The notes beneath the pieces were generated by a model that was given only the letters and a program-made list of their open reading frames with translations, was not told where the DNA came from and ran no database searches. A program made the translations under genes and the position numbers. Positions 1-60,121 of a stretch of 64,000 bases of DNA are shown here, in pieces. The stretch lies in the IMG/VR virus record IMGVR_UViG_3300032242_000723, positions 62,001 to 126,000 of that record; one strand, given 5' to 3'. How positions within the stretch are numbered: the first letter of the stretch is position 1; every line of letters begins with the position of its first letter.

Positions 1-303
1 AGTCGTATCATGAATTTCTATGCGAATGCCCAAGGACGTTCTAGGATGATGGGTGAAGCTTACAAGGCAAGGTTCATGCTGTTCACTACTGGCAAAGGGC
101 TGCACTACAAGCTAGAAGCTAATACCTTTGATGAAATTGAGGTCATCAACTTTAGTATGATCGACAAGAAAATTAACGGCAATCCTTTCTTTTGGAATGC
201 GTTCTTTATCAAAATGGGCTTGCCTGCAATTCCTATCGAATTTGTTAAGGACCCAGAATATTTGAGTTTAGAAGCTGAACTTGAATTAACCATTGACAAT
301 TGA
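1..303 (+). CDS. C-terminal fragment of an ORF entering from outside the window, function unknown
   Basis: Frame 1 is open from base 1 to TGA at 301-303; no diagnostic motif in the fragment. Confidence 0.6.
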   Translation, partial: SRIMNFYANAQGRSRMMGEAYKARFMLFTTGKGLHYKLEANTFDEIEVINFSMIDKKINGNPFFWNAFFIKMGLPAIPIEFVKDPEYLSLEAELELTIDN

Positions 304-357
304 TCAGTCTTCGTATATAGTACGAAGATAGTAACATCTTACACACAGAGAAAATTT

Positions 358-1497
358 ATGGATCTGGTAAAAATCAACGAAGTTATTAGCTATGTGAGGA
401 CTGGGTTTAAAGGTAAACGCTTTACTAATAACCCGTCTCCATTCACTCCTGCTCCTCTATCGAAAGAGATTCTAAACAAGATTCCTGACGTGTCGGGAAA
501 AATTGCCGTTTTCTTTACAGTTGAGTTTGCAGTTGAATTGCGGGTACGCGGCGCGGATGATGTGACGATCATTACTGAGCAACATTGCCCTGAAACAAAG
601 ATCATAGCTGACTATCTTGGTTATAAGTACATGTTGCTACAAGATGTAGAGGGAAACGATATGAAATTCGATGTGGTAGTTGGTAATCCGCCTTATCAAG
701 GTACAGCAGAAACACACCAAAAATTCTTCAACATGGCAGTTGAACTGACTAAGGACGGTGGTATAGTATCTTTCATACAACCTGCTACTCCGTACTTTAA
801 TAAAAAAGAAAAGGTCGGCAATCACACTACGGAAATGATCTCAAACATCAAAAAATATCGGTGTGAGGTAAAAATTGTTAGCGGATCAGTATTTGCGGCG
901 GCAAACATCAATACAGCCTTGGCTATTACGTTATTGACTAAGCTACCAAACACTGCAGGAAATTTAGTAAAATATGAGAGTGAATTGGGCAGGCAATATC
1001 AAAATATCAGTATTGACGCCATTAACATGTTAGATATGGATCCGATATTATACCAATCATTGGTAAATAAGGTATTTAACGTTGTTAATAAAAACGGTTC
1101 AATACAAGAGTTAATTACTACCGATCTATGCGAAAAAAAATTAGACATGAAGCAAATACGGGGAAATGCAGGGCGGCAAGATTTCTATACGTTGATTTCT
1201 CGTGATGCTACAAATTGGAAGGTAGATACTAAGTTTGAATACGGATTATCAGTCAGCGGAATAGCTGACGTTTCCTTTCTAACTAATTATCTAACTTCCT
1301 ACATCGCTAGGTTTTGTTTGTCTATATATAAATTTAATGCAAACAACCATCGAGGAGAACTGCGTAGTGTTCCTCAAGTCCCGTTTAATGTAGACTGGGA
1401 TGACAAAAAGCTTTGCACTTATTTTGGTATCACTGATATTGAGTATGCAGAGATCATTAGGTGTATTCCAGACTATCACGGAAAAAATGTGTCGTAA
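358..1497 (+). CDS. N6-adenine DNA methyltransferase-like protein (Eco57I/TaqI-type catalytic motif IV plus probable target-recognition region), SAM-binding motif I degenerate
   Basis: FDVVVGNPPY motif IV followed by FF..A..L.KDGG.VSFIQP; no DPxCGxG upstream. Confidence 0.75.
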   Translation: MDLVKINEVISYVRTGFKGKRFTNNPSPFTPAPLSKEILNKIPDVSGKIAVFFTVEFAVELRVRGADDVTIITEQHCPETKIIADYLGYKYMLLQDVEGNDMKFDVVVGNPPYQGTAETHQKFFNMAVELTKDGGIVSFIQPATPYFNKKEKVGNHTTEMISNIKKYRCEVKIVSGSVFAAANINTALAITLLTKLPNTAGNLVKYESELGRQYQNISIDAINMLDMDPILYQSLVNKVFNVVNKNGSIQELITTDLCEKKLDMKQIRGNAGRQDFYTLISRDATNWKVDTKFEYGLSVSGIADVSFLTNYLTSYIARFCLSIYKFNANNHRGELRSVPQVPFNVDWDDKKLCTYFGITDIEYAEIIRCIPDYHGKNVS

Positions 1498-1500
1498 ACT

Positions 1501-1947
1501 ATGCAAGTATCTAAGATAGTCGATCACATCCGCAACCGCTCGTACATGAGCGGAGTTGAACGAAGCAACCTAAGAGTGAAGGCTACCGGTGAAGTCTTCA
1601 CTCCAACTCCACTTGTTCAAGAGATACTAGATAAGTTGGATCCTATTCTGTTCACGGATCCAACTAAGACCTTTATCGACCCTAGTTGTGGCGATGGGCA
1701 ATTCTTAGGTGAAGTTCTTATCCGCAAGATAGAGAACGGTAGCACGTTTGAACAGGCATTAGGTACTATATATGGTGTCGATCTGATGCAAGACAACGTT
1801 GATCTATGTCGTGATAGATTACTATGCGGAAGAGAAGACCTCAGACACATTGTCGAAAAGAACATTGTGTGCCATGATGGACTTACGTATGACTATTCGT
1901 TCGGCGAGACCGTAGCGTTTGGCAATGGTTTCTTTAGCTTCACATAA
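1501..1947 (+). CDS. N6-adenine methyltransferase SAM-binding module (motifs X, I-III) without NPPY
   Basis: TGEVFTP motif X, FIDPSCGDGQFL motif I, IYGVDL, NIVCHDGL; protein ends before any NPPY. Confidence 0.8.
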   Translation: MQVSKIVDHIRNRSYMSGVERSNLRVKATGEVFTPTPLVQEILDKLDPILFTDPTKTFIDPSCGDGQFLGEVLIRKIENGSTFEQALGTIYGVDLMQDNVDLCRDRLLCGREDLRHIVEKNIVCHDGLTYDYSFGETVAFGNGFFSFT

Positions 1948-1997
1948 GGCTTGACATCTATCCATTAAGTGCGTATATTAAATGATCGAACGTTAAC

Positions 1998-2426
1998 ATG
2001 AAAGATTATTCAATGTCACTTTTCCGCCCCAAATGTGTCGTAGACGGCTGTAACAAATCAGGTCAACACACAGGTCAATATAGAGTAGATGGTACTGTTG
2101 TTTACCGAAAAAAGTGCGGTACACACCATTCAATGGCATATAAAATGGGAGATTGGGTGTACAAAATAAATCGCAAAGATTATTGTGAAAACATCGATGG
2201 TCGTTTGGGATTTGTATGCACTAGTACCATTATTGATATTGCTTGGCAACTGGATGTTGATCACATTGACGGAGACCCATCAAACAACGACCCTAGCAAT
2301 CATCAAACATTATGTAAGTGCTGTCACCCAATCAAGACTCGCAATGAGCGTGATTACATGACGCCAGGACGTAAAACATTGAAAGAGGCAACTACTTTCG
2401 GTAGCGGACTTTTCTGTGACGCTTAA
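1998..2426 (+). CDS. HNH endonuclease with Cys-rich N-terminus
   Basis: LDVDHIDGDPSNNDPSNHQTLCKCCH. Confidence 0.8.
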   Translation: MKDYSMSLFRPKCVVDGCNKSGQHTGQYRVDGTVVYRKKCGTHHSMAYKMGDWVYKINRKDYCENIDGRLGFVCTSTIIDIAWQLDVDHIDGDPSNNDPSNHQTLCKCCHPIKTRNERDYMTPGRKTLKEATTFGSGLFCDA

Positions 2427-2484
2427 GGCTTGACATCCAGCGCTATCCTTGCTATAATATGCGTATAAATAGAGAAAGCCTCAC

Positions 2485-3492
2485 ATGAAATATGCACTGA
2501 TCGACACTGCTAATACCTTCTTCCGAGCACGTCACGTTGCGTCTCGCAATACCGATACTTGGGAAAAGATCGGCATGGCAATGCATCTTACACTGTCGTC
2601 TGTCAATCAGATGGTTCGTAAGTTTGGCGTTGATCATGTTGTCTTCTGTCTTGAGGGTCGTTCATGGCGTAAGGATTTCTACAAGCCATACAAGGCCAAT
2701 CGTGTTAAGTCTGATGCGACTGAAGCAGAGATTGAAGAAAACAAGATGTTCTGGGAAACGTATGAAGCGTTTACTACGTTCATTAGCACTAAGACTAATG
2801 CGTCGGTGTTGCGTCATCCTAATGCAGAAGCAGATGACCTCATTGCTCGTTTCATCGCGTTGCATCCTGATGATGAACATTTCATTATCTCCAATGACAC
2901 TGACTTTGTGCAACTGATTGCAGCCAACGTCAAGCAATATAACGGCGTTGCTGGTCAACTGATCACGCTCGAAGGTTACTTTGATGATCGCGGTAAGCCT
3001 GTCAAGGACAAGAAGACTAAGGAACCTAAGTTGCTTGAGGATCCTGAATATCTACTGTTCAAGAAGATCATTCGTGGTGACGCTACTGACAATGTGTTTA
3101 GTGCATATCCAGGTGTCCGCGAGAAGGGCACTAAGAATAAGGTTGGCATTGTTGAAGCATATGCTGATCGTAACAAGCAGGGGTTCTCGTGGAATAACCT
3201 AATGTTACAAAGCTGGACTGATCACGATGATGTACAGCACAAGGTTATTGATGACTATCGTCGCAATCGCACACTGATTGACTTGACCGCACAGCCTGAC
3301 GAGATCAAGCAAGGTGTTGACCAAGTTATTCGTGAGGGTGTTCGCACTGAACCTGTGTCGCAGGTTGGCATTCACTTTATCAGGTTTTGTGGAAAATATG
3401 AGCTTACTAAGATTTCTGAACAGGCTGAGACTTATGCTAAGTGGCTAAACAACACATACAAAGGAGCGTTGTTAGATGCTGTCGTTGCGTGA
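2485..3492 (+). CDS. rnh: T4-type RNase H / 5'-3' flap exonuclease
   Basis: ALIDTAN, EGRSWRKDFYKPYKANR, EADDLIA, SNDTDFVQL, GDATDNV. Confidence 0.9.
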   Translation: MKYALIDTANTFFRARHVASRNTDTWEKIGMAMHLTLSSVNQMVRKFGVDHVVFCLEGRSWRKDFYKPYKANRVKSDATEAEIEENKMFWETYEAFTTFISTKTNASVLRHPNAEADDLIARFIALHPDDEHFIISNDTDFVQLIAANVKQYNGVAGQLITLEGYFDDRGKPVKDKKTKEPKLLEDPEYLLFKKIIRGDATDNVFSAYPGVREKGTKNKVGIVEAYADRNKQGFSWNNLMLQSWTDHDDVQHKVIDDYRRNRTLIDLTAQPDEIKQGVDQVIREGVRTEPVSQVGIHFIRFCGKYELTKISEQAETYAKWLNNTYKGALLDAVVA

Positions 3493-3805
3493 ACTTCAAA
3501 AAGTGTTTGCACCTACTAGGACATATGTTGGCCAAACAGTAAATCCAGGCTTTCGATTTGGAGAACTAAACATCACCTCATTCGGCCGCATGAACAGTAA
3601 CTATTGGTTTCAGATTAAAGGTATTTGGTATCATAAATCTGTTATTAGCGTCGCCTTGAGATGGTCGGCTGATATTGTAATCACAAAGGACGAGCACGGT
3701 GCGTTCAAATATATAAAATATCGTGGGCACGGTGATCTGCGACCACTGAATGAAGCAGAACTAAAAGAAATGGCTTGGATTATTCTTAGTGCGGAGAAAG
3801 CATAA
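3476..3805 (+). CDS. hypothetical protein
   Basis: 109-aa ORF overlapping neighbours in a co-directional run. Confidence 0.55.
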   Translation: MLSLRELQKVFAPTRTYVGQTVNPGFRFGELNITSFGRMNSNYWFQIKGIWYHKSVISVALRWSADIVITKDEHGAFKYIKYRGHGDLRPLNEAELKEMAWIILSAEKA

Positions 3806-6860: not shown

Positions 6861-7844
6861 ATGACAATACAAACCTGGTTTACTGGATATAATAACTTCC
6901 AAAAACTTACCCTATTATCAGGTCAAGGGGAAAATCAGTTTATTACGGAAATGGTTGATGTAGAGACACAGCCTTTTCAGACTATACAAGAAACGTTTGC
7001 TGCTCATCTTACTGGTGCTACTCATCCAGTAGAAGTATTATACAGCGGTGGTATGGACAGTGAATTCGTACTTAAAGTATGCCTGCAAAACAAAACACCT
7101 GTCACTGCAATTACAATGAGATTGATGTTTCGGGGAAGCCCTATTAACGTTCAGGATCTGTATTATGCTGAAAAGTTTTGCAGAGAAAATAGTGTTTCTC
7201 ATAAGATAGTAGATTTAGATTATGAACCATTCTTTAAGAACGGTGACTATGCTAAATATTTGGATCCTTATCTATTAACATTCTATTCAACTGCTACTCA
7301 ATTATGGTTATTAACACAATGCGATCATTTTCCTATAATAGGCGGAGGGTATACGTGGCCTCAAATTAACATCGGTAAAAAGATATTCAGTCCAATTCGC
7401 AACGAAGCTGCATTCTTTGATGTGTTTATGCGAGATAATGGCATTACAGGCATAGGTAACATGCTTGGACATAGTTTAGAATCAAATATTATGCTAGCAA
7501 AAGAACATGTAAAGGTGTATCTTAATGACCCTGAAAATGTACTAGGAGACGAGTTGAAGATAAGAGTTTTGAAACAACGAATGTGGGAGAATTTAGGAAT
7601 AGGGAATCTTGAGTTTAGACATAGATTTAATGGCTGGGAGATGTACCCGCGACTTAATGACTGGTACAACATAATGGATCCAGTTGAAGCATCGTTAAAG
7701 CGAAACAACTTAACTATCAGTACCATTAAATGGGGCCAAAAATTAGCAGATGCAATAGGGGGTGATTCTGGTGAAAACTCAGATTTTGGCGCAGGTGATG
7801 CAGAGCTATTAGCAAAGGTCAGGCAGATAATTAATTCCCAATAA
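6861..7844 (+). CDS. PP-loop (adenine nucleotide alpha-hydrolase-like) protein
   Basis: VLYSGGMDSE near N-terminus; TAAATA motif upstream. Confidence 0.6.
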   Translation: MTIQTWFTGYNNFQKLTLLSGQGENQFITEMVDVETQPFQTIQETFAAHLTGATHPVEVLYSGGMDSEFVLKVCLQNKTPVTAITMRLMFRGSPINVQDLYYAEKFCRENSVSHKIVDLDYEPFFKNGDYAKYLDPYLLTFYSTATQLWLLTQCDHFPIIGGGYTWPQINIGKKIFSPIRNEAAFFDVFMRDNGITGIGNMLGHSLESNIMLAKEHVKVYLNDPENVLGDELKIRVLKQRMWENLGIGNLEFRHRFNGWEMYPRLNDWYNIMDPVEASLKRNNLTISTIKWGQKLADAIGGDSGENSDFGAGDAELLAKVRQIINSQ

Positions 7845-8920: not shown

Positions 8921-9411
8921 GTGATAACCTAGGTCCCTTAACCGTTGCCAACAGTCGGGCAGAACATGCTGAAATGAGGCTTGCTGGGGCGGCTAAAGCC
9001 TACAGTGATTTAGCTGACCAATTAGCCGCCGAACAGAAAAAGTCTGACCTCGCGATTGGTACGGTAGAAGGTCTAAAAGCTGATCTGTATGATGCGGTGC
9101 AGACTGCATACCATCGTGGTGCTGTTGATTGGGTTAAGTGGAACTATCCAAGGTACTATGATCAACTCAAGCACACTTCTCCCGTGTATGCTGATAGCCC
9201 AGCAAGTTCCAACGTTACCCTTGATGTCGCACTTAGCCTGTTACGAGAAGGTTCACAGACTGAAAAGGTCCAGGCATTTCTCGCAAGCGTAGAGCCTTCT
9301 GCTATAGCAAAGATCATTGAAGCTGAGAAGAACGGTGAATGGTCAGATCCGGTATCAGGTGAGAAGATGATAGAGACAATTAAATCCTGGGTTGACGAAA
9401 ATAATGGTTGA
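8917..9411 (+). CDS. hypothetical protein with N-terminal coiled-coil character
   Basis: ATGA overlap; 164-aa ORF. Confidence 0.6.
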   Translation: MSDNLGPLTVANSRAEHAEMRLAGAAKAYSDLADQLAAEQKKSDLAIGTVEGLKADLYDAVQTAYHRGAVDWVKWNYPRYYDQLKHTSPVYADSPASSNVTLDVALSLLREGSQTEKVQAFLASVEPSAIAKIIEAEKNGEWSDPVSGEKMIETIKSWVDENNG

Positions 9412-9436
9412 CATCAGATATCCGTTTTGCTATATT
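9408..9436 (+). promoter_or_regulatory. early sigma70-type promoter
   Basis: TTGACA-17-TATATT. Confidence 0.8.
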
Positions 9437-9467: not shown

Positions 9468-10136
9468 ATGAAGAAGAAGTCGCTTTCATACCCTACTGAA
9501 AAAGTTTTCGCTGCTGCATGTGCGGCTCTTCGCATCAATGAAGGTGAGTATCTCAAGGAAGATGTTCTGTCATATGATAACGAGGATGTCATCACTGTCA
9601 AAAAGATGGCTAACAAGAACCTCGTCCGTCAGTTGCTGAAGGGCAACATCATTTTCGGTACGATCACTGAAGCCGATCATGAGCAGGGTGTTATGGTCCG
9701 TCGTTACTATCAGGGTTTTTCTTTCAAGATCCTGGCAGGCAAGCGTTTGAGTGACTTTGATCATGGTGCAATGACTGCTGCTACCTCAGAGATGGTTACG
9801 AATTTCCTAGAAGTTGGCATCATCGCTTATCTCCCAGTTGGCTATAATCGTTATAAGGATCGTGTAAGCGTAGAGCAACGGTTGGCTACTGCCCAGGGAT
9901 ATATCGCAAAGATCGGTGATAAGGTTAAGAGTGAGATTGAAGTCGTGAAGTCTTACTACAATCGTGATTGGAATACTAGTTACATCACTGGCCTGACTGA
10001 TGAAAACAAGGCTGTGTTTTTTAGCTATCGTGAAGATATTGAAATTGGTGTACGCATTACTGTTTCAGGTCGGGTTAAAGATACTCGTAATGACAAGTAC
10101 GAAGTCACCCAGCTAACACGAGTTAGGGTTCTCTGA
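9468..10136 (+). CDS. hypothetical protein with probable C-terminal OB-like beta domain
   Basis: C-terminal pattern IGDKV..EIEVVKS...ITVSGRVK...QLTRVRV. Confidence 0.6.
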   Translation: MKKKSLSYPTEKVFAAACAALRINEGEYLKEDVLSYDNEDVITVKKMANKNLVRQLLKGNIIFGTITEADHEQGVMVRRYYQGFSFKILAGKRLSDFDHGAMTAATSEMVTNFLEVGIIAYLPVGYNRYKDRVSVEQRLATAQGYIAKIGDKVKSEIEVVKSYYNRDWNTSYITGLTDENKAVFFSYREDIEIGVRITVSGRVKDTRNDKYEVTQLTRVRVL

Positions 10137-10259
10137 ACCTTAAGTATGGGTGTTCATCTAAGCCCGAATGGCATTTCGTAAATTGGGTCTCCCTTAAATG
10201 GGTTGTAAATTCCCTAAGTGTGCTGCTTGATGAACACCCAAGATATTCAGGATTTGAGT

Positions 10260-10478
10260 ATGAGTTATGTAGTTGATGTAACCCATCAACCGAAATGGTA
10301 CGTGAATGCGTGGATGGATGCCTTTTACATGTCGGGGGCGAGGCTGACTGGCGACAATAGTTGGAATCTTTTTTATCCTGACTATGTTTTTAATTGGGGC
10401 GCGGGCCCTTATGGCCCGAACACTGTTACTTTTCCAGATGAACAATCGTATATTATGTTTTTATTGAGGTGGTCATGA
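10260..10478 (+). CDS. LRWS-array small protein 1
   Basis: Ends NTVTFPDEQSYIMFLLRWS; start 10260 is a guess (10218/10230 possible). Confidence 0.7.
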   Translation: MSYVVDVTHQPKWYVNAWMDAFYMSGARLTGDNSWNLFYPDYVFNWGAGPYGPNTVTFPDEQSYIMFLLRWS

Positions 10479-10735
10479 AAAAGAAAAAGATCACGCTTGA
10501 CACTGAGACACTAGACCGTGTTTGGAGTAACTGGCTTGTTGATAATAATACAACGTCCGTTAATGCTACTCGGCAAACACGATATCGTTATTATACAGGC
10601 TATAATGATTTACAAACAAAGTTTAAACTGTGGTTGCAAGATCACGGTGCCGCCGTTCGTAAAGATCATCGTGTTCACATCCTTGAGTTCCAAAATCCTG
10701 AACATGCAACCTTTTTTATATTGAAGTACACATGA
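10475..10735 (+). CDS. LRWS-array small protein 2
   Basis: ATGA overlap; ends HILEFQNPEHATFFILKYT. Confidence 0.75.
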   Translation: MKKKKITLDTETLDRVWSNWLVDNNTTSVNATRQTRYRYYTGYNDLQTKFKLWLQDHGAAVRKDHRVHILEFQNPEHATFFILKYT

Positions 10736-10941
10736 GCAGCAAGTTTACAGCGTATGATCTTGACTATGGTATGTCCCATGAATATACCTTAGTCTGTAAT
10801 AACTTGCCATATTTGCTTGACAATGAAAACGAAATCAGAGAGTGGCTGAAATCCTATACCAAAACAGGAAGGATTGAAGGAATCGTTGTTGTCTTTGATA
10901 TTCCGGAAGAGCGGCCCTGGTTTATATTGAGGTGGTCATGA
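10732..10941 (+). CDS. LRWS-array small protein 3
   Basis: ATGA overlap; ends IVVVFDIPEERPWFILRWS. Confidence 0.75.
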   Translation: MSSKFTAYDLDYGMSHEYTLVCNNLPYLLDNENEIREWLKSYTKTGRIEGIVVVFDIPEERPWFILRWS

Positions 10942-11147
10942 GTTACGAGGTTACGGCTGACGAAGAGGTTACAGTTTGGTTTGCGAATGCATGGGAGAAC
11001 GTGTGTGACCCTGTTAACGGGGCCATACGCGACAACATGTGGCACGAAACCTATAATAGTATTCTTGAGTACGACGGTGACGGTAAGTGGAAAATCACTT
11101 TTCCATCTGAGCAAGATTATATTTGGTTTGTGTTGAAATGGTCATGA
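10938..11147 (+). CDS. LRWS-array small protein 4
   Basis: ATGA overlap; ends WKITFPSEQDYIWFVLKWS. Confidence 0.75.
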   Translation: MSYEVTADEEVTVWFANAWENVCDPVNGAIRDNMWHETYNSILEYDGDGKWKITFPSEQDYIWFVLKWS

Positions 11148-11347
11148 AGGAATACGAGATTGCGATTAGGCCTGAACTGATTATTCATGAAAACGGCGGC
11201 TTTGCTTTTATTGATGAGGTTAGTGTTTGGTTGAAAGAAAATAAAGTGTTCGGTTGGTATGCAGTTAAAGTTCCATTAGAACGGGAATATTATATCTGGT
11301 TCACTAACACAACCGATGCTATGTTATTCATGTTGAGATGGTCATGA
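11144..11347 (+). CDS. LRWS-array small protein 5
   Basis: ATGA overlap; ends YYIWFTNTTDAMLFMLRWS. Confidence 0.75.
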   Translation: MKEYEIAIRPELIIHENGGFAFIDEVSVWLKENKVFGWYAVKVPLEREYYIWFTNTTDAMLFMLRWS

Positions 11348-11586
11348 GTGAACCTGTTGACATGATGAGTGCTCGGTATCTTTCTATCATAGATGAAGCT
11401 CGGTCGGCATCTCCAAGATTGCAGGCTGTTACTCGGCCATGGATTAACTATCTCAGAGAATATGGTGAGGATTCTGAACTGGCAATGAAACGACTGTCAG
11501 AGGAATATCATGGCACTTATGTTAGTAGCGGCATCGTTTTTAGAACCGAAGAAGATAAAGTCTGGTTTCTGTTGAGGTGGTCATGA
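11344..11586 (+). CDS. LRWS-array small protein 6
   Basis: ATGA overlap; ends SGIVFRTEEDKVWFLLRWS. Confidence 0.75.
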   Translation: MSEPVDMMSARYLSIIDEARSASPRLQAVTRPWINYLREYGEDSELAMKRLSEEYHGTYVSSGIVFRTEEDKVWFLLRWS

Positions 11587-11804
11587 GTACCGTTCTGTTT
11601 TATGTTCCTATCATGAATATCGATGATGCATTTTGTAGGTCGGCAAATCCGGTTTGGACTAACTTTCACCGAGCAAGTGGTTGGGGAACGGATGCCGCGG
11701 TAAATACTTGGTTAGCAAATGAATATAATGCTACACTTGTAAATGATATGATCGTTTTTAACAACGAGAAAGATAAGATCATGTGGATATTGAGGTGGTC
11801 ATGA
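11583..11804 (+). CDS. LRWS-array small protein 7
   Basis: ATGA overlap; ends DMIVFNNEKDKIMWILRWS. Confidence 0.75.
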   Translation: MSTVLFYVPIMNIDDAFCRSANPVWTNFHRASGWGTDAAVNTWLANEYNATLVNDMIVFNNEKDKIMWILRWS

Positions 11805-12127
11805 CAGGACCTTTGAAAATAGTTAAAGTAGAAGTGAATACACGTACTAGGAAACTTGTTGAAAACTGGACTTGTAAGATATTACCAGAAGTAGAGTCAT
11901 ACATAGAACCATTATTAGGCGAGTGGACTCGCGACGGTATTGTTGTATATTGGGCTAAATTCAAGAGTCCTATTAAGCGGGCTACTATCAAAGAATGGTG
12001 CACAAGCATATACGGGCCAGAACTGTCAACTAGAAACGAAATTGAATGGAGATGGTTTTGTAAGTATGATAAGGTCGTCTTTAGGCTTGAAGCAGATCGG
12101 TTGATATTTGTATTGAGGTGGTCATGA
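11801..12127 (+). CDS. LRWS-array small protein 8
   Basis: ATGA overlap; ends DKVVFRLEADRLIFVLRWS. Confidence 0.75.
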   Translation: MTGPLKIVKVEVNTRTRKLVENWTCKILPEVESYIEPLLGEWTRDGIVVYWAKFKSPIKRATIKEWCTSIYGPELSTRNEIEWRWFCKYDKVVFRLEADRLIFVLRWS

Positions 12128-12145
12128 GTACTATATCGTTTGATG

Positions 12146-12706
12146 TTATCTTGACTTACAAGAATCAAAATGATATCGTTTCATATTTGAGGTTCCTCCG
12201 GACTTTTTACAATGTGGACAGGTTATTTGCTGCTGCGGACCCTTCAGAACTCCTGTTTGTTTGAGTGATCGTTTTAACTTTTGTTCTTCACTCATCGGGC
12301 CTTTAGTAACACCTTTTAATCGTTTGCTCATCTGGTCAATGAATGATTGAGTTTTAGGACGCTTTAAGTGCGGGAAGGAACGACCTTTCAACGCCTTTGA
12401 GCGTTTCATTCTGGTTTCTTCGGTACCTGCTCCTCCCGGACCTCCTCCGGTTTCTGGTATCTTATTAGCCCACTCAGTGCTTTCTACGATATTCCATAAA
12501 CTGCTGAAATACCTTCCCCAATGAGAAAGTTCCTCATTTGTTTGACACTCTTTGATAACTTCTGTTTTAACATCCGGACCGTGCTCACGTATGTGTTTGA
12601 CCCAATCTTTTCCAGAACCTTTATAGATGAACGGGTTCTGAACTGTTTTGCCAAGATATTGTAGACCGGTTTTGTTGTGGGTCTTCTTATACAAATAAAT
12701 AGTCAT
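12146..12706 (-). CDS. GIY-YIG-type (Seg-like) endonuclease with basic NUMOD3-like linker and C-terminal Zn finger
   Basis: IYLY-x-YLGKT, YKGSG, WAN..PETG; CPHCKKSGGTSNMKRYHFDSCK. Confidence 0.8.
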   Translation of the reverse strand: MTIYLYKKTHNKTGLQYLGKTVQNPFIYKGSGKDWVKHIREHGPDVKTEVIKECQTNEELSHWGRYFSSLWNIVESTEWANKIPETGGGPGGAGTEETRMKRSKALKGRSFPHLKRPKTQSFIDQMSKRLKGVTKGPMSEEQKLKRSLKQTGVLKGPQQQITCPHCKKSGGTSNMKRYHFDSCKSR

Positions 12707-12837: not shown

Positions 12838-14178
12838 ATGTCATCGTCGTGGATCAAACAACTCAACGAAAGCGACTCTCGCTTACATAAAGAAAACATT
12901 ATCGGACAGGCGCTTACTGCTGCGTTGTTAGGCAATGAGAATGCTAACTTCTGTCTTGAAATGCTACAACTCTGTTACGACACATATATTACATTTGGTG
13001 TGAGGCAGATTCCAGAAACGGTTGGTATCGTTGATGCGGAAAATCCCTGGTCAGAGTTCATTGATCTTACTGTAAGTCTCGGCACTCGTGAACTTACCGG
13101 ACATGATGCTCGTGATGCTATTCAATCATTATCTGAACGATTTGACAGTGATGAGTGGAACATCTTCCTTGCTCCTATCTTGCGTCGGGACATGCGTTGC
13201 GGCATCTCTTCAACTACGATCAACAAGGTCTGCAAGAATACGAAGTATGCTATCGCAGTGTTCGGTTGCCAGCTTGCGACCAACAGTGAGGGTCGCCCGG
13301 AGATGAAGGGCGTTAAGCGTCTTGAACCTAAGTTGGATGGTGTCCGTGTTCTAATGGCTGTTCAAATGACTCAGTTCGGTCCAAAAATCGTGACCAGCTA
13401 TAGTCGTAACGGTAAACAGTTTGAGAACTTCAAGCACATTGAAAAGCAAATTAGTGATAACTTTACCCGATTGATCGGTGCGATGGGAAGCAGTGAATAC
13501 TTTGGGTCAGGCATAGTGTTCGATGGTGAGATCGTAGGCAACAGTTTTCAAGAACTGATGCGGCAGGCTCGGCGCAAGAATGATGTTCAAAATGATGACA
13601 GTGTTTATCATATCTTTGACATGATTCCTATGGATGACTTTAAGCGTGGTCACTGGAATGCACAGTTGTCTAAGCGTCTTTTGCTACTACGCCGCATGAA
13701 TACTGTCATTGACGCGATGCCTAATGTGGAACTTCTTCCTCACCTTGAAGTCAACCTTAACTCACCACATGGCGTCACTCATCTTGAAACTTACGCTAAT
13801 GAGATGGTCGCAGCAGGGTTTGAAGGCATTATGATCAAGGACCTTGACGCTCCATATGAATGCAAGCGTAATACATCCTGGATGAAGTATAAACCCGTAC
13901 ATGACTATGATCTCACTGTAATCGGAGTTGAACCTGGTACTGGAAAGAACAAGGGAAGAATGGGAGCATTAGTCTGCGAAGGTGTTGATGATGGAAAACA
14001 CATCGTGGTTAATGTGGGCAGCGGATTTACGGATGTTGAGCGACAAGAATATTGGGATAACCGAGATGATGTGGTCGGTCGTTCGGCCGTAGTTATGGCA
14101 GATGCGATAACACTTAATCAAAGCGGAACCTATAGTTTGCGGTTTCCCAGGTTTAAATCATTTAGGTACGATAAGTGA
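12838..14178 (+). CDS. lig: ATP-dependent DNA ligase
   Basis: EPKLDGVR (motif I), FDGEI, HIFDM, EGIMIK, WMKYKP, SLRFPRF. Confidence 0.95.
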   Translation: MSSSWIKQLNESDSRLHKENIIGQALTAALLGNENANFCLEMLQLCYDTYITFGVRQIPETVGIVDAENPWSEFIDLTVSLGTRELTGHDARDAIQSLSERFDSDEWNIFLAPILRRDMRCGISSTTINKVCKNTKYAIAVFGCQLATNSEGRPEMKGVKRLEPKLDGVRVLMAVQMTQFGPKIVTSYSRNGKQFENFKHIEKQISDNFTRLIGAMGSSEYFGSGIVFDGEIVGNSFQELMRQARRKNDVQNDDSVYHIFDMIPMDDFKRGHWNAQLSKRLLLLRRMNTVIDAMPNVELLPHLEVNLNSPHGVTHLETYANEMVAAGFEGIMIKDLDAPYECKRNTSWMKYKPVHDYDLTVIGVEPGTGKNKGRMGALVCEGVDDGKHIVVNVGSGFTDVERQEYWDNRDDVVGRSAVVMADAITLNQSGTYSLRFPRFKSFRYDK

Positions 14179-14858
14179 CCTTCATAAACAACCTGTAATA
14201 CTTCATCGGAAAGTTGGTACCAGCCAGACTTTATATTAGTTTGCTTATCTAACTCTTGTCGTATTTTTCTTGGTATAGTTTTTCTTAACTGATTGAGTGT
14301 TTTAACAATGTCTCTGTTGCCTTTTGCGATGTTTTTACTTTTTATCTTGTCTAGTGTTTCTTTCTTTATTTCAACTCCGCAGTTATCAAAGTGATGACGG
14401 TGCATAACAGAAACGCCACCGCGTTTGCCGCAATGCGGGCACTCAACTATTGGTTTTGGTTTACGTTTTTTGGCTTTGATGTATTCGGGTTGTGGTTTAT
14501 CTTTATTACCCGGAGAGACGCCGGTTCTTGCTTTAGATGACGCTAAGGGACAAATAGAACGACCATCACTTTCGTTCAAATAATCCTTTCGGCTAATAAC
14601 CTTCATCTTCCGAAGGATGCGGTGCTCCCAGATTCTGGCTTTATTTACCGCATTATTGCCTGAAAAGATTTTTCTTATTTGTATTATATCGGGGTTGCCA
14701 TGTTCTTTGACATATTCTGCTACATTTACGCTTGAAGTAAAGTATGTTTTCCAAAGATCATTTGGGTGGCAGTCTTTTGCATACCTAACCCCGTAGTATT
14801 TCATTCCTGTAGTAGACCAGGTAATATAATAGGTATAAGGAATATTATAAATAGTCAT
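14130..14858 (-). CDS. GIY-YIG-type endonuclease with Zn finger
   Basis: YTYYI-x-YYGVR, YFTSS, WEHRIL, YLNES; CPHCGKRGGVSVMHRHHFDNC; ATG 14858 follows the conserved leader. Confidence 0.75.
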   Translation of the reverse strand: MTIYNIPYTYYITWSTTGMKYYGVRYAKDCHPNDLWKTYFTSSVNVAEYVKEHGNPDIIQIRKIFSGNNAVNKARIWEHRILRKMKVISRKDYLNESDGRSICPLASSKARTGVSPGNKDKPQPEYIKAKKRKPKPIVECPHCGKRGGVSVMHRHHFDNCGVEIKKETLDKIKSKNIAKGNRDIVKTLNQLRKTIPRKIRQELDKQTNIKSGWYQLSDEVLQVVYEGHLSYLNDLNLGNRKL

Positions 14859-14925
14859 GCTGATGCTCCTGTAAGCGTTAGAGTAGTTGGGAATCCCCAT
14901 TCCGTGAACTACATCTTTATTTATC
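14859..14925 (-). promoter_or_regulatory. conserved endonuclease leader copy 2
   Basis: GATAAATAAAGATGTAGTTCACGGAATGGGGATTCCCAACTACTCTAACGCTTACAGGAGCATCAGCATG. Confidence 0.8.
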
Positions 14926-14988
14926 TTTTTGATTGACATATCTGTTTAAACCTGTTATAAAGAAGAAACATGGGAGACATTAAAAATA

Positions 14989-17180: not shown

Positions 17181-18350
17181 ATGAACTACTGTTCCTTCTG
17201 CGGAAGCCATAAAGATAAAGTCCGCAAGTTGATTGTGGGTGATGATACTGCGATTTGTAGTGATTGCATTACCTTATGCAACCAACTGATAGAAGAGCGA
17301 GTTCAACAAAGTGTACAAGGTGAGTTTGACGCATATAGTATCAAAGCACATTTGGATGAGCATGTGATTGGTCAAGATTCTGCTAAAGAGGTGATCAGTG
17401 TTGCGATATCAAATCACTATAAACGAATCAACTATCCACCCAAGCATATTGAGATCCAAAAGGGCAATGTGTTATTGATTGGGCCAACTGGTTCTGGTAA
17501 GACATTGCTTGCTCGTGCTGTAGCGAAATATCTAAACGTTCCCTTTGTAGTGGCAGATGCTACTAGCCTGACTGAATCAGGATATGTAGGTGAGGATGTT
17601 GAATCAATGATCTCTACCTTACTATCACTTGCTGACAACGATGTTAGCTTGGCCGAGCGTGGTATCGTGTTCATTGACGAGATTGACAAGATTGCTCGTA
17701 AGAGTGAGAGTGCAAGTCTAACTCGTGATGTAAGCGGCGAAGGTGTGCAACAAGCATTATTGAAACTGGTAGAAGGTACCACTTGCCGCGTAAGTCCTGC
17801 TGGAGTTCGCAAAGGCCCAAACAGTGAGACCGTTGAAGTTAGCACCAAGAACATACTCTTCATAGCAGGTGGAGCCTTTGTTGGCCTTGAAAATATCATA
17901 AAGAGTAGAGTAGGCGGAGCGTCTATAGGATTCAATGCACCGTTGAAGTCTAAGACAAAAACTATTGACTATTCTAATATCGCACCCGGTGATCTTACTA
18001 AGTTTGGAATGATTCCTGAACTGGTTGGTAGATTTACTACGACTATCACATTAGAAGAACTGTCATTAGATCAGTTAGTCTTGGTATTGACTACTGTAAA
18101 AAACAGTTTCATTGAACAATACAAGTACATGTTTGAGATTGATGGTATTCGATTGGTATTTACCGATGAGGCCATTGTAAGAATCGCGCAGAAATGTCTT
18201 GATCTAAAAACAGGTGCTCGTGGATTACATACCGAGATAGAGAAGGTATTAATGCCTCACATGTTCCACATTCACAAGTACTCAAAGAACAAGATAGGCA
18301 AGATCACTATCACTCTTGATCTAGTTGATAATCCAAAATCTTTAGTATAA
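17181..18350 (+). CDS. clpX: ClpX AAA+ unfoldase
   Basis: C4 zinc finger CSFC..ICSDC, Walker A GPTGSGKT, GYVGED pore loop, FIDEIDK, RDVSGEGVQQALLK, IGF loop, TGARGL. Confidence 0.95.
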   Translation: MNYCSFCGSHKDKVRKLIVGDDTAICSDCITLCNQLIEERVQQSVQGEFDAYSIKAHLDEHVIGQDSAKEVISVAISNHYKRINYPPKHIEIQKGNVLLIGPTGSGKTLLARAVAKYLNVPFVVADATSLTESGYVGEDVESMISTLLSLADNDVSLAERGIVFIDEIDKIARKSESASLTRDVSGEGVQQALLKLVEGTTCRVSPAGVRKGPNSETVEVSTKNILFIAGGAFVGLENIIKSRVGGASIGFNAPLKSKTKTIDYSNIAPGDLTKFGMIPELVGRFTTTITLEELSLDQLVLVLTTVKNSFIEQYKYMFEIDGIRLVFTDEAIVRIAQKCLDLKTGARGLHTEIEKVLMPHMFHIHKYSKNKIGKITITLDLVDNPKSLV

Positions 18351-23252: not shown

Positions 23253-25628
23253 ATGAAGTTAAAATATTTACTCGCAGCTACTACTGCTGCACTGTGTCTG
23301 TCTTTCGGGACTGCACATGCAGTTGAGGTTGCTGATGATCCATCAGTGATCGTTATTACCGCAACCAAGCGAGAAACTAATCTAAAGGATACCCCAATCT
23401 CAGTCGTTGTTCAAAACGCACAGAGCCTTCAGGATCGTCACGTTCAAAGTCTAGTTGACTTTGCTGATGGTGCGGTCCCATCGCTTCGCGTTGCAACTTT
23501 TGAGTCACGTCAATCAGCATTGACTATCGGCATTCGTGGTATTGTTCCTTTTGATGCAAATCAAACGGCACGAGATCAGGGCGTTGGTGTTTATCTTGAT
23601 GGCGTCTATCTTGGTCGTCAACAAGGTCTGAATGCAGCATTGTTTGATGTTGATCGTATTGAAGTCCTTCGTGGTCCTCAGGGAACACTCTTCGGTCGTA
23701 ATACTGAAGGTGGTGCATTGTCAATCATCACTAAGCAACCAACTGGTGAGTTCGGTGGCAGTTTGACAGGTGGCATTGGCAACTACGGTAGCTATACTAC
23801 ACAGGCTCACATTGATCTTCCTTCAGTTGCAAACATCGCAGTTAAGGTTGATGGTGTTGTTCAACATCAAGATGCTACGGTGAAGAATATTCTTGCTGGT
23901 CAAACTGGCTGGAACTATCGTCACAATGTCGGTGGAAAGATCACTGCAAAGTGGGAACCTACTGACAACTTCTCGGCTACGGTATCATACGATAACGTAC
24001 ACGACAAGAACACGCCAAACTATAGCCAACTGATCAACTACAACCCAACGAATAAGACTGTTGGTAAGTATGATACAGTGACTAACAAGCTGGTTGCACC
24101 TACTGCACCTACTGGCACTTCAACTGTTTGTGCGACTTGTATTGCCCCTCTCTCACGCCTCGTGTATGTGAGTGGTACTGATCGTCAATCAGTTGCTGAA
24201 ATCGGCGTTCCACAACAGCCTAGCATTGGTGACTCAAATGGTTACTCTGCTAATCTGAAGTACACGGTTTCACCAACACTGGAACTTCGCTCTATCACTG
24301 CAAAGCGTAGGGTAACTACTGAACAGTGGGACAACTCGGGCGGCGCACATAGAACGATCTTTGCTCCTAATGCAAACTTCAGCCGGTACAGTCTGTCGCA
24401 TTTGTATCAAGATCAAGTCAGCCAAGAATTCCAAGCAGTAGGCGAATTGCCTAAGTTGGATTATGTTGTTGGTCTGTACTACTTCAAGGAACATGTTCAA
24501 GAATATGCGGCAACTGCATCCACTAATAAGTGGAACGCAACTGGTACTGCATATACGATCAACAGCCCATCGGTAGCAGGAGCAATCACTTCTTCTAACA
24601 ATGGTTGGAATCCTTACTCTTGGTTCTTTGCGCGAAACAGCCGAGCAACTTCTGAAAGCAAAGCCGCTTTCGCTCAAGCAACTTGGACACCAGTTGAAAA
24701 GGTTCACTTGACTGTTGGTGGTCGTTATACAGAAGACAAGCGTAATGGTGCGTTGACTGTTGTATCTGGTGTTGCTACTCCTTGGAAGTTGAAGTTTGAT
24801 AAGTCACGCTTTGATCCAATGGTAACGGTTGCGGTTGATGCTACTGATCATATCAATGCATATGCTAAGTATTCAACTGGCTATCGTGCTGGTGGTGCAA
24901 ATGATCGTTCTTCACGATTTAGTGCATTCGGTCCAGAATCTGTTACAGCGTATGAAATCGGTACTAAGGCAAATATGTTCGACAACACTGTCAATCTAAA
25001 TGTCGCAGGTTATATGATGGATCGCACTGGAACTCAGATTGACTTTGACCACGTTGATACTTCACCCTATCTTGCTGATGGCGTGACTAAGAACCCAACT
25101 TTCAATCTTCACACCGAAGATACTGCGAATGCTCCTGGCACTTCAAAGATTCGTGGTGCTGAAGTTGAATTGACTGTTCGTCCAACTAACCGACTATCGT
25201 TTGGTACGTCTTATGCGTATACATATACTAACATCCCTGCTACTCTGAACCCACAAACTGGTGCATTGACTAAGGTGTTCGTTGTGTACACTCCTAAGAA
25301 TGCGGCAGCAGCTTATGTTGACTATCGTATCCCACTCAAGAACGATGCTCGTGTAGAACTACACGCCGATGCTAACTACTCTGATGCAGTTTACAGTTTC
25401 CAGAATGAAAATGTACTGACACAGCCTAGCTTCATCGTCAACGGTCGGGTTGCTCTTGCTAACCTCTCTGTTGCTAATCAGAAGACTTCTGTCTCACTTT
25501 GGGGCAGAAATATTCTAGACGAGACGCATGTTTATCGTAGGTCTGATGCTAATATCACGACTCTCGGTTCTTATGCAAACTTCAATCCACCTCGCACTTT
25601 CGGTGTAGAAGTGAATACGAAGTTCTAA
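23253..25628 (+). CDS. TonB-dependent outer-membrane receptor
   Basis: Signal peptide, IVITATKRE TonB-box region, IRG, VYLDGV, IEVLRGPQGTLFGRN..GGA plug motifs, C-terminal PRTFGVEVNTKF. Confidence 0.93.
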   Translation: MKLKYLLAATTAALCLSFGTAHAVEVADDPSVIVITATKRETNLKDTPISVVVQNAQSLQDRHVQSLVDFADGAVPSLRVATFESRQSALTIGIRGIVPFDANQTARDQGVGVYLDGVYLGRQQGLNAALFDVDRIEVLRGPQGTLFGRNTEGGALSIITKQPTGEFGGSLTGGIGNYGSYTTQAHIDLPSVANIAVKVDGVVQHQDATVKNILAGQTGWNYRHNVGGKITAKWEPTDNFSATVSYDNVHDKNTPNYSQLINYNPTNKTVGKYDTVTNKLVAPTAPTGTSTVCATCIAPLSRLVYVSGTDRQSVAEIGVPQQPSIGDSNGYSANLKYTVSPTLELRSITAKRRVTTEQWDNSGGAHRTIFAPNANFSRYSLSHLYQDQVSQEFQAVGELPKLDYVVGLYYFKEHVQEYAATASTNKWNATGTAYTINSPSVAGAITSSNNGWNPYSWFFARNSRATSESKAAFAQATWTPVEKVHLTVGGRYTEDKRNGALTVVSGVATPWKLKFDKSRFDPMVTVAVDATDHINAYAKYSTGYRAGGANDRSSRFSAFGPESVTAYEIGTKANMFDNTVNLNVAGYMMDRTGTQIDFDHVDTSPYLADGVTKNPTFNLHTEDTANAPGTSKIRGAEVELTVRPTNRLSFGTSYAYTYTNIPATLNPQTGALTKVFVVYTPKNAAAAYVDYRIPLKNDARVELHADANYSDAVYSFQNENVLTQPSFIVNGRVALANLSVANQKTSVSLWGRNILDETHVYRRSDANITTLGSYANFNPPRTFGVEVNTKF

Positions 25629-37711: not shown

Positions 37712-38182
37712 ATGAAGCCTAAGTTCATTGAATACTACATGAAGTTTGCAGAGTTGACCAGTACACTGAGTCATGCAAAACGATTGCAGGTTGGTGCCGT
37801 TATTGTCAAGGGTGATAGTCAAATCATCGCTACAGGCTATAACGGTATGCCAACTGGATGGGATAACACCTGCGAAGAAGAGCATGTAGAGTATGTAAGT
37901 TCTGGTTACGGTATGCCCATGAGGGAAGAAACATATCTAAAAACTCGTCCAGAAGTCCTCCACGCGGAGAGCAACGCCATTGCTAAAGTAGCACGATCTA
38001 CTGAATCAAGTGAAGGTGCCACATTGTTCTGTACTCACGCTCCTTGTATGGATTGTGCTAAGTTGATCTATCAGGCTGGTATCTCTACTGTGTACTACAA
38101 GGAAAAGTATCGCGACGAAGGTGGAGTGAAGTTTTTGTGTGAAGGTGGTGTAAGTGTCCATCAGCATCCCGACAGCGTTTAA
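37712..38182 (+). CDS. dCMP deaminase
   Basis: QVGAVIVK, TGYNG.P.G, VLHAESNAI, THAPCMDCAK; start 37712 preferred. Confidence 0.92.
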   Translation: MKPKFIEYYMKFAELTSTLSHAKRLQVGAVIVKGDSQIIATGYNGMPTGWDNTCEEEHVEYVSSGYGMPMREETYLKTRPEVLHAESNAIAKVARSTESSEGATLFCTHAPCMDCAKLIYQAGISTVYYKEKYRDEGGVKFLCEGGVSVHQHPDSV

Positions 38183-60113: not shown

Positions 60114-60121
60114 ATTATTCT

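Follow-up and report, generated by a model that had tools for sequence, protein, structure and literature searches.

We found that eight tandem copies of a small, so far unnamed phage protein end in codons that also form the putative ribosome-binding site and the start of the next gene, that thousands of relatives in uncultured T4-like phages share this junction, and that whole genes are gained and lost there. The array lies at positions 10260-12127 of the window, a 64,000-nucleotide stretch of a 333-kb IMG/VR jumbo-phage contig. The first-pass annotation, which had described a chain of ATGA-joined ORFs of 67-108 aa with a recurrent C-terminus, was confirmed in its observation, whilst its interpretation, a shuffling array of variable N-terminal domains on a shared docking module, was only partly supported.

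The array and its junctions

The sequence and ORF list showed eight consecutive plus-strand genes, each overlapping the next by ATGA and ending in h-F-x-L-[RK]-W-S or a variant of it: p1 (10260-10478, 72 aa, ending LLRWS), p2 (10475-10735, 86 aa, ILKYT), p3 (10732-10941, 69 aa, ILRWS), p4 (10938-11147, 69 aa, VLKWS), p5 (11144-11347, 67 aa, MLRWS), p6 (11344-11586, 80 aa, LLRWS), p7 (11583-11804, 73 aa, ILRWS) and p8 (11801-12127, 108 aa, VLRWS), the last having the longest N-terminal extension. The 15-mer TTGAGGTGGTCATGA occurs in five exact copies (10464, 10927, 11572, 11790 and 12113-12127), with one 1-mismatch copy (11333, AGA, ending p5) and one 2-mismatch copy (11133, AAA, TTGAAATGGTCATGA, ending p4), against a chance expectation of 0.22, and none of 100 shuffles reached seven. 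It is confined to the array within the window. The eighth junction (10721, TTGAAGTACACATGA, LKYT, ending p2) is more diverged. Spacings are 200-323 bp, and a scan of the whole window found the [hh][RK][WYF][ST]-stop ending only in these eight ORFs. Leu is TTG in 8/8, Arg is AGG five times and AGA once, and Lys replaces it twice.

GAGGUGGUC pairs with 3'-CUCCACUAG-5' over 9 nt with one G:U. In five of the eight junctions GAGGTGG lies with its GAGG core 5 nt from the ATG, and the predicted duplex with the generic 16S tail (the host was not identified) is -14.1 kcal/mol, the strongest Shine-Dalgarno (SD) class in the window: the median for 82 other window genes is -5.5 kcal/mol and only one of them reaches -12 or below. 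The p5 junction is intermediate (-7.4 kcal/mol), whilst those of p4 (-4.1 kcal/mol) and p2 (-0.9 kcal/mol) are weak, that of p2 having lost the SD but kept ATGA. Since these three junctions are retained, the SD is helpful rather than essential. Local mRNA folding showed no consistent sequestration or exposure of the SD, although the SD window used was offset by 3 nt and we draw nothing from it. SD-stimulated frameshifting that would fuse neighbouring cassettes was rejected on sequence grounds, since the downstream frame is -1, G-GUC-A is not a slippery site, and a prfB-like +1 shift would enter the wrong frame.

The annotation had described the N-terminal parts as unalignable, but p1/p4 (34% over 73 aa) and p6/p7 (40% over 68 aa) align over their full length as in-array duplicates, and the conserved region spans about 40-50 aa rather than 19. 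In a family profile search p1 scored E = 1.8e-7 and p5 had the best score in the window (E = 3.3e-9); p3, p4, p6, p7 and p8 were also detected. The tail profile does not detect p2, which is linked to the family through gene a3 of a 71%-identity relative of this locus, termed L122 (E = 7e-10), and has an ortholog there, a6, at 72%. The L122 orthologs of p1 (68% identical, dN/dS 0.33) and p3 (a7, 79%, dN/dS 0.34) fall within a dN/dS range of 0.33-0.45 between window and L122 orthologs, consistent with real genes. The closest relatives of p8 are in other phages.

Upstream of the array, the best sigma70-like promoter match of the region (9408-9436, +; TTGACA-17-TATATT with TG, 11/12 match) precedes a 222-aa gene of unknown function (9468-10136, +; phrog_2319), which served as the anchor for finding relatives and whose L122 ortholog is 71% identical. 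This is a consensus match only, but no terminator-like site lies between it and the array and it is the likely promoter of the operon that includes the array. Between this gene and p1 lies a conserved structured leader (10137-10259, +) in which an 11-bp perfect inverted repeat (10148-10158/10230-10240) closes a long stem (-37.7 kcal/mol, z = -2.65). The leader is 93% identical to that of L122, against 77-79% for flanking coding DNA, and its one diverged patch keeps a hairpin. An Rfam search of 8.5-13.5 kb found nothing, the leader used as a probe of viral contigs returned only the source contig, and it is not repeated in the window. Downstream, the last junction starts ORF9 (12124-12264, +, 46 aa), which has no family motif, was not called by gene callers, and overlaps the 3' end of an antisense homing-endonuclease gene (12146-12706, -; phrog_314, E = 5.2e-13) abutting the array. 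ORF9 may be a remnant or a spurious ORF; as to whether it is the N-terminal stump of a cassette split by the endonuclease gene, no C-terminal remnant lies beyond that gene and there is only weak similarity to the start of p7, which does not settle its origin. A lone ninth family member lies at 38154-38354 (+, 66 aa, GTG start, ending LLWNK, E = 2.5e-6); it has the canonical W..WC motif and is coupled to the next gene by TGATG without an SD.

A virus-restricted family with a dual-coded C-terminus

The exact 15-mer was found in at least 120 viral stretches and ends ORFs of the same family in at least 96 other viral contigs; of 175 occurrences in 119 non-self loci, 149 end an ORF recognised by the family profile. 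In about 0.9 Mb of retrieved loci we counted 563 family ORFs in runs of up to 13, with about 15-16 consecutive in one further array (L127), and 7,943 protein clusters at 50% identity match the profile at E <= 1e-3, with the module at the extreme C-terminus. The layout, of which the annotation knew no described example, is thus common in uncultured phages. Neighbouring genes are T4-like, such as those for a gp41-like helicase, RnlA, Td and long tail fibres. In 596 Gb of cellular genomes there were only four pattern hits, two of them on small phage-like contigs in MAG bins. Megablast and blastn of the array gave no match in GenBank phages, and tblastn of three family members found nothing credible there even at E <= 1 to 10.

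A match to a known domain with a known role had been named in advance as grounds for rejecting the proposal, and none was found. The window proteins gave no significant match, 120 members scanned against Pfam-A and PHROGs v4 and 64 against NCBIfam 20 yielded only isolated single-member hits, and a profile search of PDB sequences gave a best E of 0.4. A word-indexed protein search gave only 26 unnamed 'hypothetical' hits, and cluster look-up added no names. Literature searches for the motif and for coding-embedded RBS repeats found no description.

Codon statistics in members not selected through the 15-mer support the annotation's claim that the junction is constrained at both the protein and the DNA level. 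L, R and W are each 82-85% conserved, yet the terminal Arg is AGG in 68% against 7% in gene bodies and the terminal Leu is TTG in 65% against 22%. The last residue is free (S, A, L, T, Q) but its codon ends in A, which gives ATGA; the stop is TGA in 221 of 306 members, and the overlap is ATGA in 182 of 306 and GTGA/TTGA in 36. The stop sits exactly one codon after Trp in 110 of 147 database representatives and 291 of 350 locus members (75-83%). Of 372 members, 358 are followed by a start within 12 nt, and AGG falls from 81% to 50% in the 14 that are not (p = 0.01).

An ordinary paralog array, in which LRWS is conserved only because the protein needs it and the SD resemblance and identical 15-mers are by-products of recent duplication or gene conversion, could be entertained because W has a single codon, because L, R and W are conserved even with TAA stops, CGN codons and the K substitution, and because p1/p4 and p6/p7 are in-array duplicates. 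We consider it very unlikely and largely refuted, since the codon bias is family-wide among proteins less than 30% identical whose other Arg and Leu codons are unbiased, the stop position and the final A are fixed whilst the last residue is free, and the bias relaxes, albeit with small n, when no gene follows. Gene conversion was rejected because the codon at position -4 is not homogenised within the window array and the bias is family-wide.

In the modular reading, variable, exchangeable N-terminal domains are fused to a common C-terminal beta-alpha docking module that binds one shared partner, and the array is an anti-defence repertoire built by shuffling those domains. We modelled p7 and the lone 66-aa member. 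The models show one compact beta-alpha-beta-beta-alpha domain whose last strand and helix are the conserved motif. In p7, pLDDT is 86-94 (ten-residue block means) over residues ~41-73, with DSSP elements helix 36-48, hairpin 50-53/56-59 and helix 62-72, and the 66-aa member is entirely one domain (pLDDT 86, pTM 0.68). In favour of the modular reading, N-terminal parts are much more diverged than the last ~20 aa, N-terminal extensions vary from ~25 to ~60 aa, the N-terminal 35 residues of p7 are modelled with low confidence, six of the eight proteins are acidic (pI 4.1-5.1) and cassette content turns over fast. However, the conserved region forms one domain together with the upstream helix and strand, some paralogs align end to end, all recombination breakpoints seen are between genes with none between an N-part and the C-module, and there is no evidence of a common partner or of anti-defence activity; an anti-defence or host-takeover role was not tested. 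We regard this reading as not supported and unlikely.

Foldseek of both models against the PDB, and of the p7 model against BFVD, found no significant neighbour of known function. The weak top hits are small ferredoxin-like alpha+beta domains (ACT, PII-like, ABM/Dabb; TM ~0.4-0.55), which resemble the models in beta-alpha-beta-beta-alpha order and two-layer packing. The final beta strand is missing, E-values are not significant (>= 0.14), there is no sequence similarity and no ligand-binding motifs were identified, so that the comparison decides neither for nor against a ferredoxin-like sandwich.

Cassette turnover and interpretation

The annotation had proposed that the junction acts as a microhomology handle and had stated that a content and order fixed across relatives would count against this; the arrays are not fixed. 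Contigs L070 and L075 (98% identical) differ by a 2-gene and a 3-gene indel, whilst L070/L091 and L078/L087 differ by one gene each. All four events, independent and in contigs about 86-98% identical, are perfect chimeras with the crossover inside 20-34 nt of shared junction repeat. At the window locus itself, L122 has a different cassette content with breakpoints at gene junctions, although four other contigs of the window's own phage carry an array identical to that of the window, p8 included; true reordering of cassettes was not examined. The clean indels were thus seen in other lineages and in this one 71% relative, not among contigs of the window's own phage. Across contig pairs, 21 of 53 internal similarity-block boundaries lie within 30 nt of a junction in both contigs, although only about 4% of positions do. 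As indels that respect gene boundaries are the ones most likely to survive, this enrichment is partly a survivorship effect and partly general phage mosaicism.

All of the evidence comes from short-read metagenome contigs, and assemblers could in principle skip between repeats of 15-35 nt, which are in the range of small assembly k-mers. That the indels are artefacts and the arrays stable nevertheless appears very unlikely, since the long form of the L070 array is reproduced in an independent sample (L059, 97% over 3.4 kb), events occur in several unrelated pairs, and the difference between L122 and the window includes diverged co-orthologs (a1 and a5 against p1) that cannot be an assembly skip. 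Similarly improbable is that the junction is primarily the recognition site of an enzyme, such as an integron-like recombinase, the adjacent homing endonuclease or an RNase, with cassettes actively mobilised or the transcript processed at each boundary and the SD likeness secondary. A homing-endonuclease gene abuts the array and another flanks the ligase, an HNH endonuclease lies near another array (L047), the junction contains the palindrome TCATGA, and breakpoints are very precise. However, no integrase or recombinase was found among the window ORFs scanned, the junction has no attC-like inverted repeat, crossovers lie anywhere within the shared sequence, as expected for homology-driven events rather than a fixed cleavage site, and the NNA-TGA and spacing rules are exactly what a start codon and SD require.

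The explanation that we favour, with reasonable though not high confidence, is that the eight genes are tandem paralogs of a very large, virus-restricted family of small single-domain proteins (consensus W..WC...G....W....hhF..E.D...F.LRW-x-stop, predicted beta-alpha-beta-beta-alpha) populating the accessory, replication-proximal regions of uncultured T4-like and jumbo myoviruses. In this view the last turn of the C-terminal helix is dual-coded: L-R-W is needed by the protein but is mostly written TTG-AGG-TGG, with the gene stopping exactly one NNA codon later at TGA, so that the mRNA reads GAGGUGG-NN-AUGA and each gene carries the translation-initiation region for whatever follows. The array would probably be made from one transcript, with ribosomes handed from gene to gene by SD-assisted termination-reinitiation. 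As the same 15-27 nt is repeated at every gene boundary, recombination or replication slippage between two junctions would delete or insert whole genes and always leave an intact, in-frame, coupled operon, such that copy number and content turn over quickly.

The analysis demonstrates the family, its spread, the dual constraint, the SD strength and cassette indels with crossovers in the junction, whereas translational coupling itself, early expression and the role of the proteins are inferred. There are no expression or ribosome data, and neither the dependence of downstream on upstream translation nor the effect of synonymous junction changes, the latter also named beforehand as a criterion, was measured. 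The only host hints are two small contigs binned with Bacteroidota MAGs, and Bacteroidota reportedly make almost no use of SD (PMC6728339), suggesting either that the binning is wrong or that the SD reading needs care. The function of the proteins is a guess: early host-interaction or counter-defence binders seem to us about as likely as not, given that six of the eight are small, acidic and Trp-rich, virus-only, fast-turnover paralogs. A more speculative possibility, which we consider unlikely but not excluded, is that the junction is a lineage-spanning, recombinase-free 'plug'. Since the same 15-27 nt ends family genes in otherwise unrelated phages, any cassette from a co-infecting phage could recombine into any array and be expressed at once, in frame and translationally coupled. 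The arrays would then work as an integron-like gene-capture and copy-number system for a fast-evolving counter-defence or host-takeover repertoire, and the L-R-W-x-stop ending would have been fixed because it encodes this plug.

The finding exposes one of the larger protein families without a name, apparently restricted to viruses and absent from cultured phages and from every curated library queried, and gives an unusually clean natural example of dual coding, in which a conserved C-terminus, its codon choice, the exact stop position and the third base of the last codon are jointly set by the translation start of the neighbouring gene. The 15-mer and the profile are ready-made probes for locating accessory-gene arrays in viral metagenomes and for selecting candidates for host-interaction or counter-defence screens.

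Comparison with known systems

Integron gene-cassette arrays likewise comprise small, mostly promoterless cassettes expressed from a common upstream promoter, with gain and loss at a repeated boundary element. Here the cassettes are paralogs, the boundary is coding plus an RBS without an attC hairpin (no inverted repeat beyond the trivial TCATGA palindrome), and recombination appears to be homology or slippage driven. No IntI-type tyrosine recombinase was found among the window ORFs scanned against Pfam or PHROGs, but not every ORF of the 333-kb contig was scanned, so the presence of one elsewhere on the contig is not ruled out. In the tandem multigene families and 'genomic accordions' of large DNA viruses, such as the poxvirus K3L amplification reported by Elde et al. 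(2012), copy-number change of tandem paralogs likewise serves as a route to rapid adaptation, but those arrays arise by recombination of whole duplicated segments with their own promoters, and no dual-coded junction is involved.

The 4-nt ATGA overlap at all eight junctions, the SD inside the 3' end of the upstream gene and the unidirectional gene chain are shared with gene pairs translationally coupled by termination-reinitiation (Huber et al., 2019; PMC6728339). ATGA pairs usually have such an intragenic SD, and removing it cut reinitiation by 60-100% in 4 of 5 E. coli pairs. Whilst that is a general arrangement of unrelated gene pairs, here one fixed SD/stop/start module is inherited as part of a protein family's conserved C-terminus across ~7,900 clusters, is chained 8 to 16 times, and has an unusually strong SD (-14 kcal/mol).

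The closest precedent, and a conceptual one that the annotation had not recognised, is the PeSL (promoter-early stem-loop) mobile regulatory cassettes of T4-type phages (Arbiol et al., 2010, PMC2839356; Comeau et al., 2014, PMC4122927). In both cases short conserved sequences repeat between small non-essential ORFs of unknown function in plastic regions of T4-like genomes, each repeat carries the expression signal for the next gene, and indels and replacements between close relatives have their breakpoints in the repeats. PeSLs, from which encapsidated mini-circles arise (not examined here), are intergenic transcription signals, a sigma70-like promoter plus a terminator stem-loop, flanking unrelated ORFs. 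In the array, promoter-like sites number 14, not above chance (10.3 +/- 2.9), and are not positioned at the junctions, and no terminator-like site lies on the plus strand within 10260-12127. The repeat is instead coding, comprising the last four codons and the stop of a protein family, it is a translation signal (SD plus ATGA start), and most of the linked genes are paralogs. The junction extends the PeSL idea, that repeated expression signals act as recombination handles in T4-like plastic regions, from transcription signals in spacers to a translation signal inside coding sequence, and in this view explains how long operons of tiny accessory genes can gain and lose members without ever breaking expression.

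The array and its genomic context

The + strand between 10260 and 12127 holds eight consecutive ORFs of 72, 86, 69, 69, 67, 80, 73 and 108 aa (here p1 to p8), each of which overlaps the next by ATGA. The 15-mer TTGAGGTGGTCATGA occurs five times exactly, once with one mismatch (AGA) and once with two (AAA), all copies being at gene ends, whilst 0.22 matches are expected by chance. The eighth junction reads TTGAAGTACACATGA (LKYT), and no other ORF in the 64-kb window ends in this motif. Leu is encoded by TTG in 8 of 8 cases, whilst Arg is AGG five times and AGA once, and Lys appears twice. The observation made in the first-pass annotation is thus confirmed and its description is accurate with one exception: the N-terminal parts, which had been regarded as unalignable, do align over their full length in the pairs p1/p4 and p6/p7, and the conserved region is about 40-50 aa rather than 19.

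The window is part of IMGVR_UViG_3300032242_000723, a 333-kb viral contig with no near relative in GenBank phages. Around the array are genes for a FEN-like 5'-3' exonuclease, an ATP-dependent DNA ligase and a ClpX homolog, an ORF that is dCMP-deaminase-like by its sequence motifs (read directly from the sequence, no family search being run), an Eco57I-like methylase, three tRNAs and a TonB-dependent receptor. The last of these, a 791-aa ORF at 23253-25628 (+), has a TonB-dependent receptor Plug domain and beta-barrel (Pfam E = 2.6e-15 and 3.2e-27), an outer-membrane receptor gene being an unusual thing to find on a phage contig. The window also holds, at 17181-18350 (+), 358-1497 (+), 6861-7844 (+) and 60039-60280 (-), the phage-encoded ClpX homolog with a zinc finger and AAA+ domain, the Eco57I-like methylase domain, a weak sub-threshold QueC-like match and the three tRNAs (Gly-GCC, Gly-UCC, Met).

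A sigma70-like promoter (11/12 match) precedes the 222-aa gene upstream of the array and no terminator-like site separates that gene from the array. The 123-nt leader before the first array gene (10137-10259, +) has an 11-bp perfect inverted repeat closing a long stem (-37.7 kcal/mol, z = -2.65). This leader is 93% identical to that of L122, a relative of this locus, whilst flanking coding DNA is 77-79% identical, and the only diverged patch keeps a hairpin with a different sequence (CCC...GGG against GAGC...GCTC). It has no Rfam match and is a candidate conserved regulatory RNA for the array operon. On the opposite strand two homing-endonuclease-like genes at 12146-12706 (-) and 14130-14939 (-) (phrog_314, E = 5e-13 and 9e-7) bracket the ATP-dependent DNA ligase gene (12838-14178), the first of them abutting the 3' end of the array. 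The last junction, with its full-strength SD, starts a 46-aa ORF (12124-12264, +) that has no family motif and overlaps the 3' end of the antisense endonuclease gene, and which may be a remnant of a ninth cassette, a real short gene or a spurious ORF.

A very large and unnamed protein family

Scanning IMG/VR for the exact 15-mer returned at least 120 stretches, and in 119 non-self loci 149 of 175 occurrences terminate an ORF of the same family, several loci holding multi-copy arrays. An HMM of the last 45 residues finds 563 ORFs in about 0.9 Mb of these loci, with runs of consecutive family genes reaching 13, 12 and 9. About 15-16 consecutive family genes (159-3690, +) fill the 6.4-kb contig DLXM01000070.1 (L127), which is binned with a Bacteroidota MAG, whilst a second contig (L128), in a Crocinitomicaceae MAG, has five; if the binning reflects the host, it conflicts with the reported lack of SD use in Bacteroidota. 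A 120-sequence profile (consensus M...W......WC....G.......W.........F..E.D...F.LRWS) matches 7,943 clusters at 50% identity at E <= 1e-3, the module almost always lying at the very C-terminus of a 56-160 aa protein. The profile also finds a ninth, lone member in the window at 38154-38354 (+), a canonical protein of 66 aa with a GTG start that ends LLWNK, sits directly after the dCMP-deaminase-like ORF, is joined to the next gene by TGATG and has no SD in its tail.

That the family maps to a known domain with a known role had been named beforehand as an outcome that would count against the initial interpretation; Pfam, PHROGs, NCBIfam and PDB sequences gave no shared match. One family-sized ORF of the 120 in the alignment matched Pfam Gp23 (E = 2.5e-5) and phrog_138, major head protein (E = 9.4e-5), but this is probably an overlapping or mis-chosen ORF in a T4-like contig, and which ORF it was we did not identify. 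GenBank phages gave no credible tblastn hit. A specific junction pattern had only 4 hits in 596 Gb of cellular genomes, of which two are chance and two are small phage-like contigs in MAG bins, and the best BFVD fold neighbours are annotated 'Uncharacterized protein [uncultured Caudovirales phage]'. Neighbouring genes in other loci are T4-like and include a gp41-like helicase, RnlA, thymidylate synthase and long tail-fibre subunits.

AlphaFold2 with the family alignment gave a confident core for p7, comprising helix 36-48, hairpin 50-59 and helix 62-72, with ten-residue block-mean pLDDT of 86-94 over residues ~41-73, and a confident whole model for the canonical 66-aa member (pLDDT 86, pTM 0.68; beta9-13, alpha17-30, beta35-39, beta48-52, alpha55-64). 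In these models the conserved hhhF..E.D...F.LRW is the last strand and last helix of one compact domain and not a separable docking module, so that the proposal of variable N-terminal domains carried on a shared docking module does not hold up. Foldseek found nothing significant, the weak hits being ferredoxin-like sandwiches such as ACT, PII-like and ABM. Six of the eight array proteins are acidic (pI 4.1-5.1) and all are Trp-rich, whilst none of the family members checked has a membrane-like hydrophobic run. Orthologs in a relative give dN/dS of 0.33-0.45, so these are real genes under purifying selection that is somewhat relaxed. p1/p4 and p6/p7 are in-array duplicates, whilst p2, p3, p5 and p8 have closer relatives in other phages.

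Protein-level and DNA-level constraint at the junctions

In order to avoid ascertainment bias we analysed about 300 family members in the fetched loci that do not carry the exact 15-mer. At the protein level L, R and W are each 82-85% conserved, with K replacing R, and F or Y replacing W. At the DNA level the terminal Arg is AGG in 68%, against 7% of Arg codons elsewhere in the same genes, and the terminal Leu is TTG in 65%, against 22%, and NTG in 84%. The last residue is free (S 39%, A 15%, L 14%, T, Q and others) but its codon ends in A, the stop is TGA in 72% and ATGA is formed in 59%. The stop lies exactly one codon after the Trp in 110 of 147 database representatives and 291 of 350 locus members, which fixes the distance from the GAGG core to the ATG at 5 nt. 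Of 372 members, 358 are followed by a start within 12 nt, and in the 14 that are not, AGG drops from 81% to 50% (p = 0.01, although n is small).

In the window the canonical junction pairs with the generic 16S tail at -14.1 kcal/mol, whilst the median for 82 other genes is -5.5 and only one reaches -12. This is what selection for an SD plus an overlapping start predicts, and it agrees with published work showing that ATGA pairs usually carry an SD in the upstream gene and that its removal reduced reinitiation by 60-100% in 4 of 5 E. coli pairs (PMC6728339). The three weak-SD junctions (after p2, p4 and p5) keep ATGA and the residue type; the protein constraint is therefore real and the SD is not indispensable.

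Cassette turnover and comparison with known systems

Two of the fetched contigs, L070 and L075, are 98% identical but differ by a 2-gene (478 bp) and a 3-gene (585 bp) indel, whilst the contig pairs L070/L091 and L078/L087 differ by one gene each. At base level every short form is a perfect chimera of the left flank of one cassette and the right flank of another, with the crossover inside 20-34 nt of shared junction, ...GTTTATATTGAGGTGGTCATGA... Of 7 clean indels among contig pairs at least 85% identical, 5 (4 of them unique) are junction-to-junction. Of 53 internal boundaries of high-similarity blocks, 21 lie within 30 nt of a junction in both contigs, although only about 4% of positions do. 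These boundaries come from at least 7 independent pairs. Boundaries at gene ends are favoured by survivorship, part of the enrichment reflects general phage mosaicism and all data are metagenome assemblies.

For the window's own locus, the relative L122 has a flanking gene that is 71% identical and carries a p1-ortholog, three cassettes absent from the window, a second p1-like gene, and then p2- and p3-orthologs, with the DNA alignments breaking exactly at the gene junctions. Contigs of the same phage (identical p8) keep the same eight genes. An array fixed across relatives had been put forward in the first-pass annotation as evidence that would refute its reading; array content is not fixed, since gain and loss were seen, though no reordering was proven, across the relatives compared.

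The best-supported reading of these data is a family-level dual-coded junction, in which the C-terminal L-R-W-x-stop of the protein is written so that it is also the SD and start of the next gene. In this view any chain of such genes would be translationally self-linking, and the repeated junction would also be a short-homology site where whole genes drop out or in without damaging expression. The function of the proteins is unknown, an early host-interaction or counter-defence role being plausible but untested, whilst the family, its codon constraint and the cassette indels are shown by the sequence data and actual translational coupling is inferred. The initial interpretation is supported in part: the SD/start role and the recombination handle hold up, whilst the modular N-terminal domains on a docking module and the claimed uniqueness of the layout do not.

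The elements of this arrangement, ATGA coupling, intragenic SD and short-repeat deletion, are known individually, and the arrangement is built on an undescribed and very large phage protein family. No integron features were found, the search for an integrase or recombinase covering the window ORFs scanned and not every ORF of the 333-kb contig, and the promoter and terminator features of PeSLs are not present at the junctions. The closest precedent is PeSL-mediated modular shuffling in T4-type phages (PMC2839356, PMC4122927), where the repeat is an intergenic promoter-terminator, whilst here it is coding sequence plus an RBS and belongs to one protein family.
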